Shown in pieces: positions 234 to 8,714 of a DNA stretch of 64,000 nt. How positions within the stretch are numbered: position 1 is the stretch's first letter; every line of letters starts with the position of its first letter. This DNA comes from Rhodosorus marinus CCMP1338 (Eukaryota; Plantae; Rhodophyta): NCBI GenBank assembly GCA_029953675.1, contig JAMWBK010000009.1:868001-932000 (forward strand). The letters are read 5' to 3'. The notes beneath the pieces were generated by a model, which saw only the letters and a list, made by a program, of their open reading frames with translations, had not been told where the DNA came from and did no database searches. The position numbers and the translations under genes were made by a program.

Positions 234-1168
234 GCCAAACCTTCAGTCCACCACGCCAAGTCTCTCCTCATCCTAGGCCCTCCTCACGACCACCCACTCC
301 ACATAGCAGAATTCCCATCACGACACATAGTTCCCCAACATAAAAAAAAACAACCATGTACGGCGCCGATCACCCACCCCCAAACGTCGGGCCTCAGAGC
401 AACAATCCTATGAAAACTCAAACATCAAACTCTCCTTTGAACACCGTCCTTTCTCTTCTTCCACCCCAGGACTCCTTAACGCATCCCAAGCCCAAATCCA
501 TGCCCAGTCCCCGTACCACCCCACCCGGTCCCACTCCCCATCCTTACCATCATCATGACAATAGTAACATAAGAAAAGTCATCACCTTCAAAAAAACTAA
601 AAAACCCTCTCCCTACCATCAAATCACACCAAACCACCCCCCTCCCCCTTTTCCTGCTCCTTTCTTTTTCCATCACATCTTCCACACTCAGGCAATCGTC
701 ACCCTTCAGGCAAAAAAAATTCAATTAGATGATTAAAAGAAGAAAAAGGGCCGATATCTTTATTAATCAGGATAGGACTCCCCCCTCCCCCCTCGCTCAA
801 AATAATTGTGATGGGGAACGCAAAGAGCAAAAACAAGGAAAAGAATATCTTCTGAGATACATCGCATACAATACTATATTGTATATATGGTAAAGTTTTT
901 TTACTTAATTGTAGACGTTTGTCTTATACGGTAGTCGAGCTGTTTTTCTGGTCCGTGCTGCTGGGGCTGGATTTCGTGAATAGGGAAAATTTTCCGAAAG
1001 GGGGGTCGCTGCAGCCATATTGGATACTGCTCATTTCTTTTTTTTTGGGAAGGGGTAATATCCAAGGTACAACATGATACAATATTAAAATATGCTATAT
1101 TTTGTCATTGTCAAAGAACCATCAGCATTCTCAGGGTCACATGGCTGGGAAATGCTTTCCAATGAGAA

Positions 1169-1216
1169 TACATTGTCGCTTTGTAAGGGGTACGAGGCGT
1201 ATCACAGCGAAGTGTT
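1169..1216 (-). repeat. Degenerate copy of the segment at ~4089-4131
   Basis: ATACATTGTCGCTTTG..AAGGGG..TA[T/C]CACAGCGAAGTGTTC is shared with 4089-4131. Confidence 0.7.
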
Positions 1217-2105
1217 CGCTGGCCGTTGGCAACCCCTTCCTGAGTTTCTCCTTTCACCCGCTTGGTCTTTTTATAGAAATGATCCACTCTGCGTTTAACC
1301 ACTGAAGATCTTATTAGTACCGCGAGTAATATAGTACGATATATTCTTATGTACTATGAATTGACCTGGGAAAAGAATACATGGTGGTAAGGGGGGGTAG
1401 GTTTTCACCCCTTGGGACAAACTGTGACACTGCCCGGATCGTGTAGAGGGCACCAAGCGAGATATCGTCAAGCTATATCGTTTCTTTGTCTCTTTTGATC
1501 AAATCTGTTAACCGCGCCCTTGGTCGAAAAGGAAAAACGAGAGCATTCCCGAAACATCTCAGTCCCTGGCCACTCTCGGCTCAAGATGACCTGCTTCGGA
1601 AGCTGATCAGCGTCCCCCTCCCCCACCCATTCCAAGGCTTTAGGACAGATGGATTGAGGATAATTTTCTCCAGCGATCATCCCGAACTGCTCCAGCGATT
1701 CATTCGTCACGGTTTTTCATCAGCGCAGACCTTGAGATGGTCTAACAACGTCAAACCCCATTGGTGCAAACATAGAAAAATATATATATAGGAAATAAGC
1801 AAAAAAATTAATATTTGGACACTAATTTCTTCTAAAATATTATCTATTTGAATATTTCGACATGACATAATTTTTCTGCGTCTGTTGGTAACGGCTAAGG
1901 TTGACCTATGCTGGTTAGTCCAACTGGACATACTTCGTCCATAGCACGCAGGCTGGAGCGACGCAGGCAGGATTGGAGCTGAGAGCCAGCGATGGAACGA
2001 ACTAGGGACATATTTCGTGGATGCGGTGAGCAGTATTGTGTATCTTGAAGCGAGTCTAGCAAGAGCGTTACAGCGTGGTTTCTCATCTGTTGTGTTTTAT
2101 GGTGG

Positions 2106-3464
2106 ATGAGTGAGAGATTGGCAATGAGTGCGAGTGAGAATGTGTACTATGTCACGAATGAGACAGTCGATAAAGTAAGAGCTTTTGAGGTCAAGAAGGG
2201 TAGGCGATGGATAGAAAAAGAGTTGACAAGACTCATTCATTCCTGGCAAGGTATTAGTCGGTCTGTGTTCAATGAGGAAAAGAGACCAGATTGGTGGGTG
2301 CCCGGGGAGGTCGTGCATTTTGGTGAAACAGCCACCGAAATTCCCTTGTTCCAGAGCAGAAGAAAAATCAGATGGACTCAGGACGCTATGCGGTGCCTGG
2401 TGGCCCGTGCCTACCAGATGATAGATTGCTCGGTCGTTGCAAGCACGGTAGACCCAAGTGTTGTAGAAATGAGTCTAAACAGCACCCGCCCTGTAGATGA
2501 CCTCTCAGCACCCATCCATGGCTCGCTTGTGAAACCGACGAAAGAGAATGCATCAGTTCAAATTCTCGATCCATCAGTGGCAGAAGATTTTGATGCAGGA
2601 CAGAGGACGTGTGCTCAGCTCAAAACTCCGGAAAGTGCTCGACGCGCTGAGAAACTGGACTCCGAGGACATCGATACTATCATCGCTGAGATGGAAGTGG
2701 AGGTCCAAGCGAGATGTGATGCTCTTAGGAGCCTCGCTGAGCAAGTTGCACTCTCCCTCCAAAATGCATTCAGCGTAGAAGTGTTAAAGCTTCCGCGCAG
2801 AGTACGAGGAATGTCTGTCAGGCAATTTTATGAGAACTATGCCGGTGATGTTGACGCGATTCTTATGCATGATATCCGCAAGACTGTAGAGGAAAGCATT
2901 GCAATGGAGTCCAGTAAGAACTCAGGTCCGTAGTATAGAGCTATCCCTTCTTGCATTGGTGCTTACCAGATGTACAAGCTTTTTCGTGTTGCTTACTTTT
3001 GGGTTTATCGTGGATACTCAGGGCTTGTGCGGACCGACAACAAGCGGCGTAGGGCAAGACTTGAAACAGCTACTGCAGATGGGCTGGCAACGGGGAGGGT
3101 GCGCAGGACAAGGGCGCGTTATCGAGAGGCCCTTCAAGATGCATCGAACTCCCAACAAACAAAGCGCGTCCCACAGATCAATGCCACGCTTCACAGAAAG
3201 AGTGGATCGTTCCAGCAAAGCGCGGATCTCCTCGTCACTCCGGCGCAACCAAAGAAAAAGGATGTTGTCGATATGGATGCTCCTGGAACTGTCATTCAGA
3301 GCATTCGAAGAGGCAAGAATGGAAAGACGCGCATCGAACTCGATGATGGACATGCAATTGAGGTATCCGACGGGATGAATGCGGAGGCCAAGTCAGTTGC
3401 TCGGATGAAACTTGTCGAGCTACAACACGAGCTGCAATCACTGATTGCGGAACTGAACGGCTGA
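2106..3464 (+). CDS. Borealin (CPC subunit)-like protein with N-terminal NRF1-like domain; 2 exons (2106-2925, 3022-3464)
   Basis: EMEVEVQARCDALRSLAEQVALSLQNAFSVEVLKLPRRVRGMSVRQF matches the Nbl1/Borealin N-terminal helix. The GT-AG intron 2926-3021 joins the two ORFs in frame (NSG|LVRTD). The C-terminal helix resembles the Borealin dimerisation region. Confidence 0.7.
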
Positions 3465-3887
3465 TCTTGAAATCTCATGGAGAAGCCCTTCGGTTCAGTA
3501 CGCAATCAATTTTCAAGTCTGCGGTTGAAATGGCAGGGACACGAGAAGCAACGAAACATCTCGTTGCAGTCGAATCCACCGTGGCAGGTCCTAACGAAGA
3601 ACGGGTGACCATTCGAAGGAACAGTCTGTGCACAATGATGATGCTTACATCTTTCACGGTAGGAACCGAATTTCCTCGCGCACGGCACGACCTCTCCCTA
3701 AGTCGCTTGTCCACCCTGCAACGCTTTGTGGTCAACGAGAGTAACAGAAGGTAGCCAATACCTGTTCCCTACTGCAAATATTTTTCTGTTTCCAACATGT
3801 TTGTCGCTAGCCTATGTAGTCAAAGGACGAGACGAGTATTGAATCCAACCAGCCCTCGCAATGCCGAGAAAATTTTCGATCATTGAT

Positions 3888-4140
3888 AAATATTTACATC
3901 GGTTCCTCAAAAAAGTTCAGGGAATGTCCCTCAGCACCTTATCGTTAAGGAAACGATTAAGAATTGCCGTTCGATAAACGCTCTACTTGTCCATGGATCG
4001 ATGTCTCTACAATGGCCACGAAAACACGCTCGCCAGGTCATTCTCGAACAAATCCATATCCTCTACCGAAGCTATCAACCTGACAGAGATACATTGTCGC
4101 TTTGAAAGGGGTGTACCACAGCGAAGTGTTCCTGACAGAG
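3888..4140 (-). pseudogene. Decayed paralog of the last exon of the F-box gene (6845-7040)
   Basis: Clear nucleotide similarity to 6845-7040 (AAATATTTAC..GGTTCCTCAAAA..CGATTAAGAA..CAATGGCCACGAAAACACGCT..CCATATCCTC..ATCAACCTG). Translation LIASVEDMDLFENDLASVFSWPL* versus LMASMEDMGLRENSLTSVFSWPLE, with in-frame stops. Confidence 0.6.
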
Positions 4141-5090
4141 ATCTTCAAAGTAAGTTGAAATGAAAGGGGGTTGTTTGAGTAAGGAAGATGACCAATGTTA
4201 CTGATGTGGTCTAAATAAATTATTTTAAAACAGTAAATTCGTTTGGCCCGAACCTTTTTGTAGGAGACTTTTGCAGAACTTTTCAACCCTTGTTTTGGCT
4301 GAAAGGGGGTTCCCAGTTTTCCATAGATGTACATTTCTACCGTGGACCACGAAAGGGATGTCCTGCAGGGAGAATCACTGTCCAGGGTCTGTGACCCAGG
4401 ACGGAAGTGTCGATGAGAATGCTAGTTGTACTATGAGCCAATTTGAGTAATGGCTCAAACCATTCCGTTGGGCCTAGCCTGTTTTGTGTCTGGTTTTACG
4501 AATGTGCACTCAGATTTCATCCAGATGTCGATCCACTTGAAACGGACAAACGTACAGATGGTTGAAAAACTGGTGTTCACAGTCGCGGCGGGACGAGGCG
4601 CGCTGTATACAAAACTACTTGTAAGTAGTATGGTTATGCTCTCTGATTTTATAGGCGCAATGAAGATCCCATAGCGACGGATGAAGGTCGTGAGAAAGAA
4701 CCGGTGAGTGCGGTTAGCTCTACTCCTTACAACATAGCCTTGGTTCCTTGTTGGATGGTTCGCTGGTCGCATTGATATTCTCATTGGCTATCGTAGCATG
4801 CCAGTGAAGGCCGCGCACACTTTGTGTCCACTCTGCAGTGACAACGATATCGTCTGCACCTCTCTATACGTTGCGCCTGGTTAGAGATGGTAGTGCGCAC
4901 TCTGAGTACATAGAACCATCGATTGTCCTCACGGTGCATGGTACGCAAAGGAGGACTAGAGCCCATTAAGAAATTGTCCAGCAGCGGTCGGACAGGATAA
5001 TTTCTTGACCAGCACGTGGGTACCGGTCAGGTTGAGACAACAGGATTCGTAGACGGCATTTCTTTATAAACTAGGGAAATTGCACGCAGG

Positions 5091-5895
5091 CTAGGCCCGA
5101 GTATAGAGTTTACCGTGGACATCCCTCTTATGATTGATGCAGGCCTTTTCCCTCTCTGTCAGCACGTTGAAGGGGTTTTCTCCTATCCAGGAGTTTGGAG
5201 TTGAGTCAACGAAGAGCGGGTTCGCGCTTACGACCTCGTCCATTTGCTCTGCAACTTCCAGTACATCAGAGATTACGTACAATTCTCCGGAGGGCTTCAA
5301 GTGCTTGGCAATGACCTCAACTAGCTCTGGTTGAAGCACGCGCCTCTTCTGATGTCTCTTTTTAAACCATGGATCTGGGAACTGGACAGAAATCGTATCA
5401 AGCATTCCAGTAGGAAGCCGCGACAATACTTCGTCCAAGGAGACGTTCGCGTTGCAGAAGATAAAGTCCAGGTTTCTGAGATTCCTATCATCTCTCCAGT
5501 CATTTGCCTACGTTGATATGATAATTGCATCCGTCAAACCCTGAAGTCCAAGAGCAAATCGTCCAATTTCTTACCTGGTCTACGAGAGGTTTTCGAATTT
5601 CGAGCCCGAGGAAGTTCTTCTCTGGGTACTTCTCCGCCATATCGAACAAAAAGCGTCCTTTGGCAACTCCAACATCGACGTGGAAGGTTCGTTCTAAACT
5701 TTCGAACTTGTCCTTTGGCCACTCTTGTTCAAGCTCAACCGGCTTCTGCATGTGCTCCGACAAGGGGTTCACGTGTTGCCGGGTCCGAACTTGCCCGGAA
5801 GCAACAACAACCCCCATCCGGTTTCCTCTTCCACATGCTGATTCAGTTGCATCAGCAGACGTGAAAGTCTGAAAACTATTTACAAAGCAAACCAT
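5091..5895 (-). CDS. trmB: tRNA (guanine-N7)-methyltransferase, plastid-type; intron 5508-5574
   Basis: Motifs RTRQHVNP, VDVGVAKGRFL, NFLGLEIR, QFPDPWFKKRHQKRR and TERE. The splice GT-AG restores the frame. MVCFV transit-peptide-like start. Confidence 0.92.
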
Positions 5896-6914
5896 CGCGT
5901 GTTCCCAAAAGGATTCCAGTCGCATTGCCTCCCTTAACGACCAAACACCTTCTCCGTCGCCTGACGTCCAAAACAATTTGACTACGGCGTCTAAAGGAGC
6001 CGGGAAAGGGCTTGCGCTAAGCACTGTCGGGAATTCTTTTGCCCGAGCCCCCAAAAGATTACTCAAAATAGTGCAGCAACGCACCAGAACAGATAAAGCC
6101 AAAGTTTCAGCTTTTGCCGAACTCTGCGGTTGGCCCGTAGTTCTCTACTCGGGTGAACTTCAGTTTGCATGTGATGGAGGTACTGGCATTCGCGGCTTTT
6201 GAACGACTTTTTCCCCTCCCGTGCCCGAACACGGACTAGTTGAATTCCGGAAGTCCCTGAAATTTTCGCTTTCTACTAGACGGATGCCCCATTCTCTCGG
6301 TCCAGACCCCGTCCAGGGAAAGTGTAGACGGACAGTCCTCCCCTGCGATGTTGTCAACTGTGCGGATGCGCAAATCCCTCTCGGATGGCTTCGATATCGA
6401 GAAACGCGTCATTCTAATCACCTCATTTCTCACATCGAAAAACCATCTGAGAGAACAAGCGCATCAACCATGGGGATAACCCGGTGTTTCTGTATAGAAG
6501 AGGCTCACTGCTGAGGCGGTCAGCCGAACATTCTTGTCTGTGAAACTGTCGGTGAGGGATTGTGCGGTCTAACAAACGCAGATGGAATGGATGCGATCTC
6601 ACGGGCGCTCAACGAATACATTTGAGGGTGTTACTATCTAGTCTTCTGCTCTCGGATGATTCAATGCGCTGTCTCTGATCAAGAATCACGAGCTCCGTTC
6701 CTCACAAAGCGTGCAAAGGGCTAGTGCTTGCTTTCTTTCATTTTGTGCGCTTAGGTTTGCTGTTTGGCAGAGGGTGCAGCAAGTCTCGTCGGGACTAACC
6801 AATGCTTGCCATGCTGAGAAAGGTTCCAATTCAAACTCAGGAATAAAATATTTACGTTAAAGGTTCCTCAAAATTTTCAGGCGGCGTCCGTCGACATCCT
6901 TCCAAAGGAAGCGA

Positions 6915-8714
6915 TTAAGAACTCAGTGGGATAAGCACTCTCTTACATAGATCTATATGTACCTCCAATGGCCACGAAAACACGCTAGTCAAGCTATTCT
7001 CGCGCAAGCCCATATCCTCCATAGAAGCCATCAACCTGCGCCACCAAACATTCAACTATTCAGCCAATGCAAATAATATATCTCATGGATGCGGTTGGAA
7101 GGTTTCCTCCTGGTACGGGCCAACCTTTGCCGTAGCTCGTCTTACCCAGCATGAATATTCCGAAACTCGGTTATCGTTCTATTCAGCGGTATCTCGTTCT
7201 CTTGGTATACCCGACCAGTTGAGGGTAGAGCGAGCACGAACCAGAAGAGCGCTACGCGCCGCAAAAACTTGCAAGCTTCTGTCCTATCTACTAGCTCATC
7301 AGCAACGAGACCACTCGAACGGGTCTGCGGAACCACTGCTATTGGTCCGGCATCGAGAAGCTCCGTCAAAGCCTTCTCGATCATTTCCGATACCTCGAAA
7401 TCTTCCCCGGATGGATCCAGAGTTTCTCTCAGAAATATATAGGGCGTCCGTTCACTATAAAACGCCATCTCCAACGTATTGTCCACCACATCCTGCATTG
7501 TGCCGCTGGTATTCCTGTTTTGAATGAACCCAGTACTACCACTTGACAAGGCGTTTAATCTATAGCCATGCCCCAAAAGGCCACTTTCCATGCGCTTCTC
7601 ACGAAGGCAAAATTCGATGCGTTCTCTCATGTATCTGATCAGCCGAACAGCCTCTTCGAGGTCCAGCCGACCTTGAGCATAACCTTCGTGAAGAGCACAC
7701 CCCTTTAGTGCTAGGTTTCCTCCTCCCTCGAGAATTTTTTCAAACTCAGCCCATCGCAACCGCAACAGCTTCTTGTTTCTCAAGACCTGCTCAAATACTT
7801 CCCGCAAACTGGATCCCCGTTTGCTTACTCTCTCAAATACACGTTTCAAAATTAGCCGAGGTGAAACCGGCTGCACTGCCATCATACCGTTTTGTTCCCG
7901 GAACTCGATAGTGGCAATCTTGCCAAGAGACTTAATCTCACTGAATGTCCTCTTTCCCACCATCTGAAACAGAAACGCCACCCTATCATGCTTTGCAGAC
8001 AAAAATCCTCTGCTATGTAAACCCGCAATACCTTCATACTTTTCATGACCTACTTTTTCGCCTCCAAACACGAGAGACCCAAAGCAGACGGGGGGTAAGA
8101 CCATTCTGATCAGCTTAATCTACCAAGTCAAGAAAACGAGAAAACCTTGCTGTCAGCTTGACTATTTTTCAGCGACAAAGACAGACAAACGTAAACATTC
8201 TTGAGTGCATTACAGCTTCCTCGCATGCGCTCCAGCTCAATATAGTCCCCGTGGAAGTCTTTACAGAAGTACCATCCTCCACTATCTCCATATCAGCCAC
8301 AAGCCTCTCTAACATACGCGCCCATAGGCCTGACCTGCTGACTACTCGTTCCAACTGTCGATTTACTCTACGCAGTTGCATGGCCCCGAGCAGATCTTGC
8401 TCGAGCAACTCACATACAATTCGGTCCCAAAGTTCGTCGTTCAGCGAGCACGTCAGCTCCTCGTCCTCCCTCCTTGCATACTTGGCCCTTCCACACGTCT
8501 CCAGGAAAACAATCCTACTTGCCCTCCTTTTCCGCGAAATACCGAAGTCCCCATGTGCATCGATTTCCGCATCCAACTCTGCATCCGTCATCGAATTGAA
8601 CCCGCGCCATGAACTCGTCTCCCCTGACGAGTAGGGCGAACCTTCGCACTCATGATACGTTTCCCCTACATCCGCAACAAGCGACCTCAAAGCGGAGTCC
8701 AAGGCCAGCGTCAT
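6915..8714 (-). CDS. F-box protein with uncharacterised C-terminal domain; predicted introns 8120-8213 and 7036-7145
   Basis: LNDELWDRIVCELL..LRRVNRQLERVVSRSGLW is F-box-like. GT-AG introns link it in frame to the 320-aa ORF 7142-8104 and to a short last exon. The splice junctions are predicted. Confidence 0.6.

Follow-up and report, generated by a model that had tools for sequence, protein, structure and literature searches.

The window analysed here, a stretch of 64,000 nucleotides from contig JAMWBK010000009.1 of Rhodosorus marinus CCMP1338, carries on its forward strand a two-exon gene whose coding sequence of 1263 nt specifies a protein of 420 aa (Table 1). This protein corresponds over its whole length to NCBI NDN08_006709 of Rhodosorus marinus (100% identity, 100% coverage), which is labelled "hypothetical" by NCBI and "Borealin N-terminal domain-containing" in the visible first part of its UniRef name. 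An earlier note, made from the DNA letters alone, had proposed that one uninterrupted exon encodes an NRF1-like DNA-binding domain fused to Borealin, and the peptides that it quoted (EKELTRLIHSWQG, EEKRPDWWVPGEV and RRKIRWTQDAMRCLVARAY) are indeed found exactly in the open reading frame 2106..2933 (+).

Table 1. Features of the Rhodosorus gene, with positions counted from the first letter of the window
Feature	Position	Strand	Remarks
5' leader	1987..2105	+	blastn alignment of the sister-strain cDNA contig L005 begins at 1987
Coding exon 1	2106..2925	+	aa 1-273 and first base of codon 274
N-terminal NRF1-DBD-like module	2160..2426	+	aa 19-107
Variable acidic linker	2427..2660	+	aa 108-185, pI 4.8
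Borealin N-terminal helix, PF10444 Nbl1_Borealin_N	2670..2834	+	aa 189-243
Intron	2926-3021	+	96 nt, GT..AG, phase 1; absent from cDNA L005
Exon 2	3022-3464	+	in frame with exon 1; stop codon included
Exon 2 first part, strongly basic region	3022..3266	+	aa 274-355, net +13, pI 11.7
Exon 2 second part, conserved C-terminal region	3267..3464	+	aa 356-420 and stop codon

The transcript structure is provided by L005, a cDNA contig from an MMETSP-derived transcriptome of another Rhodosorus strain, which aligns to positions 1987-2926 and 3018-3577 with the intron spliced out and carries the mRNA 119 nt or more upstream of the start codon. A full-length cDNA had been suggested as a check on the fusion; the sister-strain cDNA contig confirms both the splice and the in-frame presence of the N-terminal segment in the mRNA: it spans that segment instead of starting downstream of it. 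The 5' leader contains short upstream ATGs and, in both the window and the cDNA, an in-frame stop ahead of the start codon. Because the cDNA covers the module in frame and this stop lies upstream, the N-terminal segment is transcribed in one open reading frame with the Borealin helix and its 5' end is delimited. The protein deduced from the sister-strain transcript (P0002, 414 aa) is 86% identical to the window protein and contains the exon junction peptide SGLVRTDNKRRR; its open reading frame begins at the second ATG (2124, Met7). Between the two Rhodosorus strains, dN/dS (Nei-Gojobori, window gene vs sister strain) amounts to 0.29 overall; it is lowest in the Borealin helix region (0.08) and reaches 0.33 in the module and 0.44 in the linker. 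As a separate observation, P0003, one of the relatives described below, appears to keep an in-frame intron at the same codon as the window intron.

In characterised Borealins, the PF10444 helix forms the CPC (chromosomal passenger complex) three-helix bundle together with INCENP and Survivin. The window protein matches PF10444 (E=1.2e-13, 50.9 bits for a gathering score of 24.4) at aa 189-243, where the earlier note had indeed seen a Borealin N-helix, and when the whole protein was searched with phmmer against PDB sequences, the best matches were weak, were all Borealin chains and fell on these same residues. Judged by its sequence, the protein is a genuine Borealin, the predicted scaffold subunit of the CPC. 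With 188 residues standing before the PF10444 match, the helix is thus not at the N-terminus. The segment that precedes it (aa 108-185) had been described as a low-complexity linker, a label that does not fit its entropy of 3.87 bits; the linker is acidic and unconserved instead, being alignable with the sister strain only.

Downstream of the helix, the basic region contains an invariant LATGRVRRTRAR..REAL.DASN stretch, and the C-terminal region has the sequence ...IRRGK..TRIELDDG..IEVS..., followed by a terminal helix, and is kept in P0002 and P0003. The claim that a Borealin C-helix follows in exon 2 was not confirmed for Rhodosorus: its protein gave no match at E<=10 to PF10512, the Borealin dimerisation domain, and a profile of the C-terminal region found no Borealin among PDB sequences. 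PF10512 was matched by the C-terminal segment of one more distant relative, at an E-value (0.005) under the cut-off, and the C-terminal region may correspond to the Borealin C-terminal domain. The top PDB matches of its profile, KaiC and nucleocapsid proteins, were judged to be due to chance. A weak match to DUF6188, also under the cut-off (E=0.001-0.004), was observed in the same region.

The N-terminal module and its relatives

From its N- to its C-terminus, the module is made of a helix, a second helix, a long loop holding a P-x-W-W motif and a beta-hairpin, and a helix that opens with W-T-Q; in Rhodosorus, it is basic (net +4, pI 9.7). AlphaFold2 models, both of them predictions from one shallow 8-sequence alignment, were obtained for the Rhodosorus module (pLDDT 88.8, pTM 0.79) and for that of P0006 (pLDDT 91.5, pTM 0.79), the two modules being 21% identical.

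When the module profile was run with HMMER against 1.84 billion representative proteins, only six proteins were found at E<=1e-3 (P0002, P0003, P0004, P0005, P0006 and P0007), and all are Borealin-like. Briefly, PF10444 is matched by P0003, P0004 and P0007 (E=2e-14 to 9e-9, 35-53 bits) and is present in the precomputed annotation of P0002. In P0006, a Borealin-N-like helix can be recognised by eye, together with a weak PF10512 match (E=0.093 over the whole protein), and P0005 has, again by eye, a Borealin-like C-terminal "SKGSP" motif only. P0003, which comes from a Logan assembly, is 39% identical to the Rhodosorus protein overall and 40% in the module; it keeps the Borealin parts, and its linker is unalignable. 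P0004 matches the module profile at E=9e-12 and shares its 90% cluster with Timspurckia oligopyrenoides, which represents a second class of red algae, this relative bearing the UniRef name "Borealin N-terminal domain-containing protein". In P0007, the module is present in a shorter version, twice in tandem. The module is a separate folded domain tied exclusively to Borealin-like proteins. As to whether the fusion is conserved in other red algae, which the earlier note had asked, it is found in the cluster that includes Timspurckia oligopyrenoides, and well-known sequenced red algae were not recognisable among the matches of the module profile in the 1.84 billion proteins.

The module alignment holds eight copies, two of them the tandem pair of P0007; the module is conserved in P0002-P0008. 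Six residues, Q48, G49, R52, P61, W63 and W64 in Rhodosorus numbering, are invariant in all eight, and W90/T91 are invariant among Rhodosorus and P0003 only, the more distant members having the T replaced or lacking the pair. Six of the eight copies are basic (net +2 to +6, pI 9.0-10.1, compared with +5 and pI 9.5 for the NRF1 DNA-binding domain, or DBD) and the two P0007 copies are near neutral.

Comparison with the NRF1 DNA-binding domain

The NRF1 sequence quoted in the earlier note agrees letter for letter with PDB 8K3D and 8K4L, and the motif shared by the module and NRF1 can be written as G-x5-aromatic-x4/5-P-x-W-W...W-T-Q...Y. The proposed profile check, however, was negative for the Rhodosorus protein, since PF10491 (Nrf1_DNA-bind) gave no match at E<=10, whether with the full window protein or with just its first 133 aa; with P0007, it gave E=5.3 (7.1 bits for a gathering score of 23.5). 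Likewise, NRF1 was not found when the module profile was compared with PDB sequences, and NRF1 proteins were not among its matches in the 1.84 billion proteins. Several other candidates were discarded: Mhr1, the only Pfam match of this 133-aa segment at E<=10, is meaningless; a dioxygenase beta subunit and a phage portal protein, obtained as PDB sequence matches of the protein or the module profile, are chance matches; and the match of an NRF1 fragment to CroV539 (E=0.006) is spurious, this being an FGxxFN leucine-rich-repeat protein.

A comparison of the module alignment with an NRF1 DBD alignment by hhalign gave a score of 26.6 over 56 columns (P=1.7e-4, probability 49%), bearing in mind that NRF1 was chosen as the comparison after the motif had been noticed and that this P corresponds to E~3 if taken as a scan of ~20,000 families. 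The alignment is collinear, from S-x-G through P-x-W-W to W-T-Q...Y. All of the 400 column-shuffled controls (200+200) fell short of that score, with means of 11.1 and 10.6, sd of 2.8 and 2.7 and maxima of 21.6 and 25.9, as did the reversed profile at 20.0. Leaving out P0007, or keeping just the four sequences of the Rhodosorus/P0003/Timspurckia type, did not change the score, and P0007 alone gave P=9.4e-6 (probability 83%) against the NRF1 DBD. The power of hhalign is limited here by a shallow NRF1 profile (Neff ~2), composed of short, mostly animal exon fragments of at least 58% identity. In P0007, the P-D-W-W-P-E region also matches PF11001 (YDR124W-like helical bundle, formerly DUF2841) in two stretches (E=0.0019, 18.6 bits, under the gathering score of 31.3), a match found neither in the Rhodosorus protein nor in the other relatives; this hints at a putative wider set of P-x-W-W-P domains.

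The fold comparison points in the same direction. Among 350,542 PDB chains, Foldseek ranked 8k4l_B first (E=1.4, TMq 0.50) and 8k3d_A second (E=2.6, TMq 0.42) for the Rhodosorus model; for the P0006 model, it ranked 8k4l_A first (E=0.33, probability 0.80, TMq 0.57, rmsd 5.7 Å over 83 columns), the other listed matches having TMq <=0.30. As 8k4l is the NRF1 dimer with DNA and 8k3d a DBD-only construct of NRF1 with DNA, the AlphaFold and Foldseek check that had been put forward places NRF1-DNA structures at the top for two models, and NRF1 chains are, among the matches listed, the only ones with TM>=0.5 for both. Taken singly, these matches of predicted models are non-significant (E 0.33-2.6, probability 0.44-0.80, rmsd 5.7-9.2 Å), and the lines of evidence are partly dependent, given that both fold searches go back to a single 8-sequence alignment and that Foldseek also scores amino-acid similarity. 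That the profile comparison and two fold searches should all point by chance to the fold of just two PDB entries is very unlikely.

The best structural match of the module is the NRF1/EWG/P3A2 DNA-binding subdomain (human NRF1 aa 201-284; 8K3D, 8K4L; part of PF10491). Both have in common S-x-G, 5 residues, an aromatic, 4-5 residues, P-x-W-W-(x)-P and W-T-Q...Y, as well as their basic charge and a layout of helix, long loop and helix, the module having in addition an extra N-terminal helix and a beta-hairpin in the loop. Taking the profile and fold comparisons together, we find it probable that the module is truly related to the NRF1 DBD, at the level of the fold and probably by homology, and it is homology, as against mere fold resemblance, that we infer. 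In the Pfam sense, the module lies outside the NRF1 family, matching no more of it than the aa 201-284 subdomain. The proposal of an NRF1-like DNA-binding domain fused to Borealin is supported as to architecture and fold match; the link to NRF1 is remote, and neither PF10491 nor an NRF1 sequence in PDB was matched by the Rhodosorus protein or the module profile.

Candidate role of the module and alternative readings

In human Borealin, the nucleosome is bound by the extreme N-terminal end, immediately ahead of this helix (PMC6891087, PMC12420818), and the Survivin/BORI homologues of Rhodophyta are reported to be short, helix-only and without recognisable extra domain (Komaki et al. 2022, PMC9680938); because of these two facts, a role of the module as an anchor is reasonable. 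We suggest, with a probability of roughly 0.55, that the best explanation is a Borealin with an NRF1-DBD-related module anchoring the CPC on DNA or chromatin. The helix (aa ~186-270) of this scaffold subunit would assemble with INCENP and a Survivin-like helix, and the module, carried by a flexible acidic linker of ~75 aa, would give the complex an extra anchor to DNA or chromatin.

In NRF1, bases are read by R206, N242 and R244, and the DNA backbone is contacted by T201, Q202, G220, G223, W224, S245, D246, K253, W258 and T259 (PMC10810270). The hhalign alignment sets W224 against F55, whose position is aromatic (F, W or Y) in the family, K253 against R85, and W258-T259 against W90-T91. The base-reading residues are not conserved in this alignment, where N242 is replaced by E and R244 by A; R206 aligns to E with low confidence, a family-wide K/R standing one residue later, and both P0007 copies are devoid of the loop that bears N242/R244 in NRF1. 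The NRF1 DBD alone binds a half-site only, full binding needing the dimerisation domain (PMC10810270), and a MADS-like dimerisation domain is absent here, only ~18-30 residues (one helix), without corresponding Pfam or PDB match, preceding the module. On the aligned residues, a nucleic-acid or chromatin-binding surface on the module is plausible, and the step from an NRF1-like fold to DNA binding is one that we take tentatively. If anything, NRF1-like specificity is weakened, as N242/R244 are unconserved and the dimerisation domain is missing: the GCGC specificity of NRF1, whose family binds GCGCATGCGC-type DNA, has probably not been kept and should not be assumed for the module.

A more far-reaching version, in which the CPC of Rhodosorus, Timspurckia and other module-bearing eukaryotes would be brought to chromosomes by an NRF1-type DNA-reading domain built into Borealin, seems to us unlikely, and sequence-specific centromere targeting by the module, which in the earlier note could direct Aurora B to centromere DNA, is speculation. 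Under such a scheme, the target might be specific centromeric or pericentromeric sequences, bivalence could come from Borealin self-association or from tandem duplication (P0007), and the module would replace the phospho-histone reader of Survivin/BORI (animals, fungi, plants), missing in red algae.

Instead of binding nucleic acid, the NRF1-DBD-like fold might serve protein-protein contacts, with histones or the acidic patch of the nucleosome, with a shugoshin or kinetochore partner, or as an intramolecular CPC regulator. We consider this alternative rather unlikely. What the module has in common with NRF1 is largely structural (G, aromatic, P-x-W-W and the W that opens the last helix) and does not include the base-reading N242 and R244, the P0007 copies have no groove-inserting loop and are not basic, and the animal Borealin N-terminus itself binds histone surfaces, not DNA sequence (PMC12420818). 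However, six of the eight copies are clearly basic, with the charges given above, Rhodosorus and P0003 retain the W-T that touches the DNA backbone in NRF1, and the one relative of this fold to have been characterised binds DNA, which speaks against the alternative.

It is also improbable, in our view, that the NRF1 resemblance arose by chance or convergence and that the module, restricted to its lineage and specific to Borealin, has an unrelated origin. Such an origin would agree with E-values that, by sequence as by structure, are not significant database-wide, with an NRF1 hypothesis picked after the motif had been seen, and with the better score of P0007 against PF11001 (E=0.0019) than against PF10491 (E=5.3); it accounts poorly for two models of 21% identity that both rank NRF1 first among 350,542 chains, as the sole match with TM>=0.5 among those listed, and for an hhalign score above all 400 shuffles with a collinear G...aromatic...PxWW...WTQ...Y. 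Finally, a gene-model artefact, in which the N-terminal segment would be a separate gene, a 5' UTR or an uORF and Borealin would start near aa ~185, is suggested by the initial helix of canonical Borealins and by the short ATGs of the leader and is highly improbable in view of the single-exon reading frame that runs uninterrupted from the module through the Borealin helix, the same continuous architecture in six further proteins from different organisms (two of them transcriptome-derived), a cDNA that extends 119 nt 5' of the ATG, and a module under purifying selection (dN/dS 0.33) that keeps 40% identity in P0003 next to an unconserved linker.

Relation to known systems

In agreement with the earlier note, whose author knew of no description of the fusion, none was found in the full-text literature on Borealin evolution, on Pfam names and on NRF1 homologues outside animals. 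What is new is a Borealin with an accessory NRF1-DBD-like domain, Borealin itself and domain acquisition in the CPC being already known. To our knowledge, the NRF1 DBD fold has been solved so far only for the human transcription factor, where it was viewed as a novel mode of DNA binding. The presence of an NRF1-DBD-like fold in an algal protein that has no part in transcription is relevant to where the fold came from; if the module did read DNA, the NRF1 DNA-binding fold would predate animals and be used outside transcription. NRF1 is a transcription factor, whereas the module forms the N-terminus of a mitotic scaffold protein. For the CPC, the module is a candidate chromatin anchor in lineages without the BIR of Survivin or the FHA reader of BORI.

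The Rhodosorus protein has the PF10444 helix in common with Borealin/CDCA8 of animals, Nbl1 of yeast and BORR of Arabidopsis, and it is also Borealin-like in what follows, a basic and probably disordered middle and then a conserved C-terminal region, in which the dimerisation domain of animal Borealin (PF10512) is not detectable. The difference lies at the other end: in canonical Borealins, the helix comes after a short tail, whereas in Rhodosorus it is preceded by ~185 residues comprising a folded module of ~80-90 aa and the linker.

Another parallel is offered by Survivin/BORI, which gained a BIR (animals, fungi) or an FHA domain (plants, stramenopiles, haptophytes) independently (PMC9680938), domain acquisition being treated by Komaki et al. 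2022 for Survivin/BORI only (PMC9680938). As in this "differential domain acquisition", an ancient CPC helix has gained in Rhodosorus a lineage-specific accessory domain that would be directed to chromatin. The module extends recurrent domain acquisition in CPC evolution to a second subunit and to a different kind of domain: the gain in Survivin/BORI is a phospho-histone reader, whereas in Rhodosorus it is on Borealin and consists of a DNA-binding-like fold.

Ends and flanks of the Borealin gene

Within the 5' leader of the Borealin gene (window 1987-2105) lie short upstream ATGs, among them one near 1993 and one at 2099, whose reading frames reach a stop either before the main Borealin ORF or in a different frame from it. 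The ORF itself has two candidate start codons, at window 2106 and 2124, the latter being the one used by the sister Rhodosorus strain. At the other end of the protein, residues 356-420 (window 3267-3461) gave a weak, sub-threshold match (E=0.001-0.004), which goes to DUF6188 and not to the Borealin C-terminal domain.

Downstream of the Borealin gene, the alignment with L005, a transcriptome (cDNA) contig of the sister strain, jumps from window position 3577 to 4686. Parts of the stretch missing from L005 are similar to window 1168-1217 (82%) and 6846-7038 (73%), and a strain-specific insertion or a dispersed repeat could account for this stretch, as could the artefactual merging of convergent transcripts. 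The convergent neighbour of the Borealin gene encodes a TrmB-type methyltransferase and adjoins it on L005 too, annotated there as PF02390 (Methyltransf_4), and a gap in the cDNA alignment at window ~5510-5561 suggests that this TrmB-type gene contains a short intron.

Coordinates of the features in the window and on the contigs of Borealin-like relatives
Feature	Location	Strand or placement	Basis
TrmB-type tRNA (guanine-N7) methyltransferase	window ~5091-6102	-; convergent to Borealin gene	FPDPWFKKRHQKRR motif
Stretch without counterpart in L005	window 3578-4685 (~1.1 kb)	3' of Borealin stop codon	cDNA alignment
P0003 gene call	L004 396-1928		
P0007 gene	L001 1447-3321		

Borealin-like relatives bearing the module

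About 40 codons of hydrophobic filler are found inside the gene call of the relative P0003, exactly at the Rhodosorus intron position. Because its DNA starts with CCTG|GTATGC and AG acceptors are present, this filler appears to be an intron that is retained in frame, its position being conserved. The 16.9 kb contig of a second relative, P0006 (contig GC 44.5%), is compact and apparently poor in introns; its other genes encode Tom37/metaxin, an AA10 LPMO, an AI-2E-family transporter, a 2Fe-2S ferredoxin and a DHX8/Prp22-like helicase.

Tandem modules and weak likeness to PF11001

In the third relative, P0007, a shortened module occurs twice in tandem (residues ~20-75 and ~200-260) upstream of the Borealin helix. 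Its P-D-W-W-P-E region weakly matches PF11001, the YDR124W-like helical bundle (E=0.0019), which hints at a wider superfamily of P-x-W-W-P domains that might link NRF1, PF11001 and the Borealin module.
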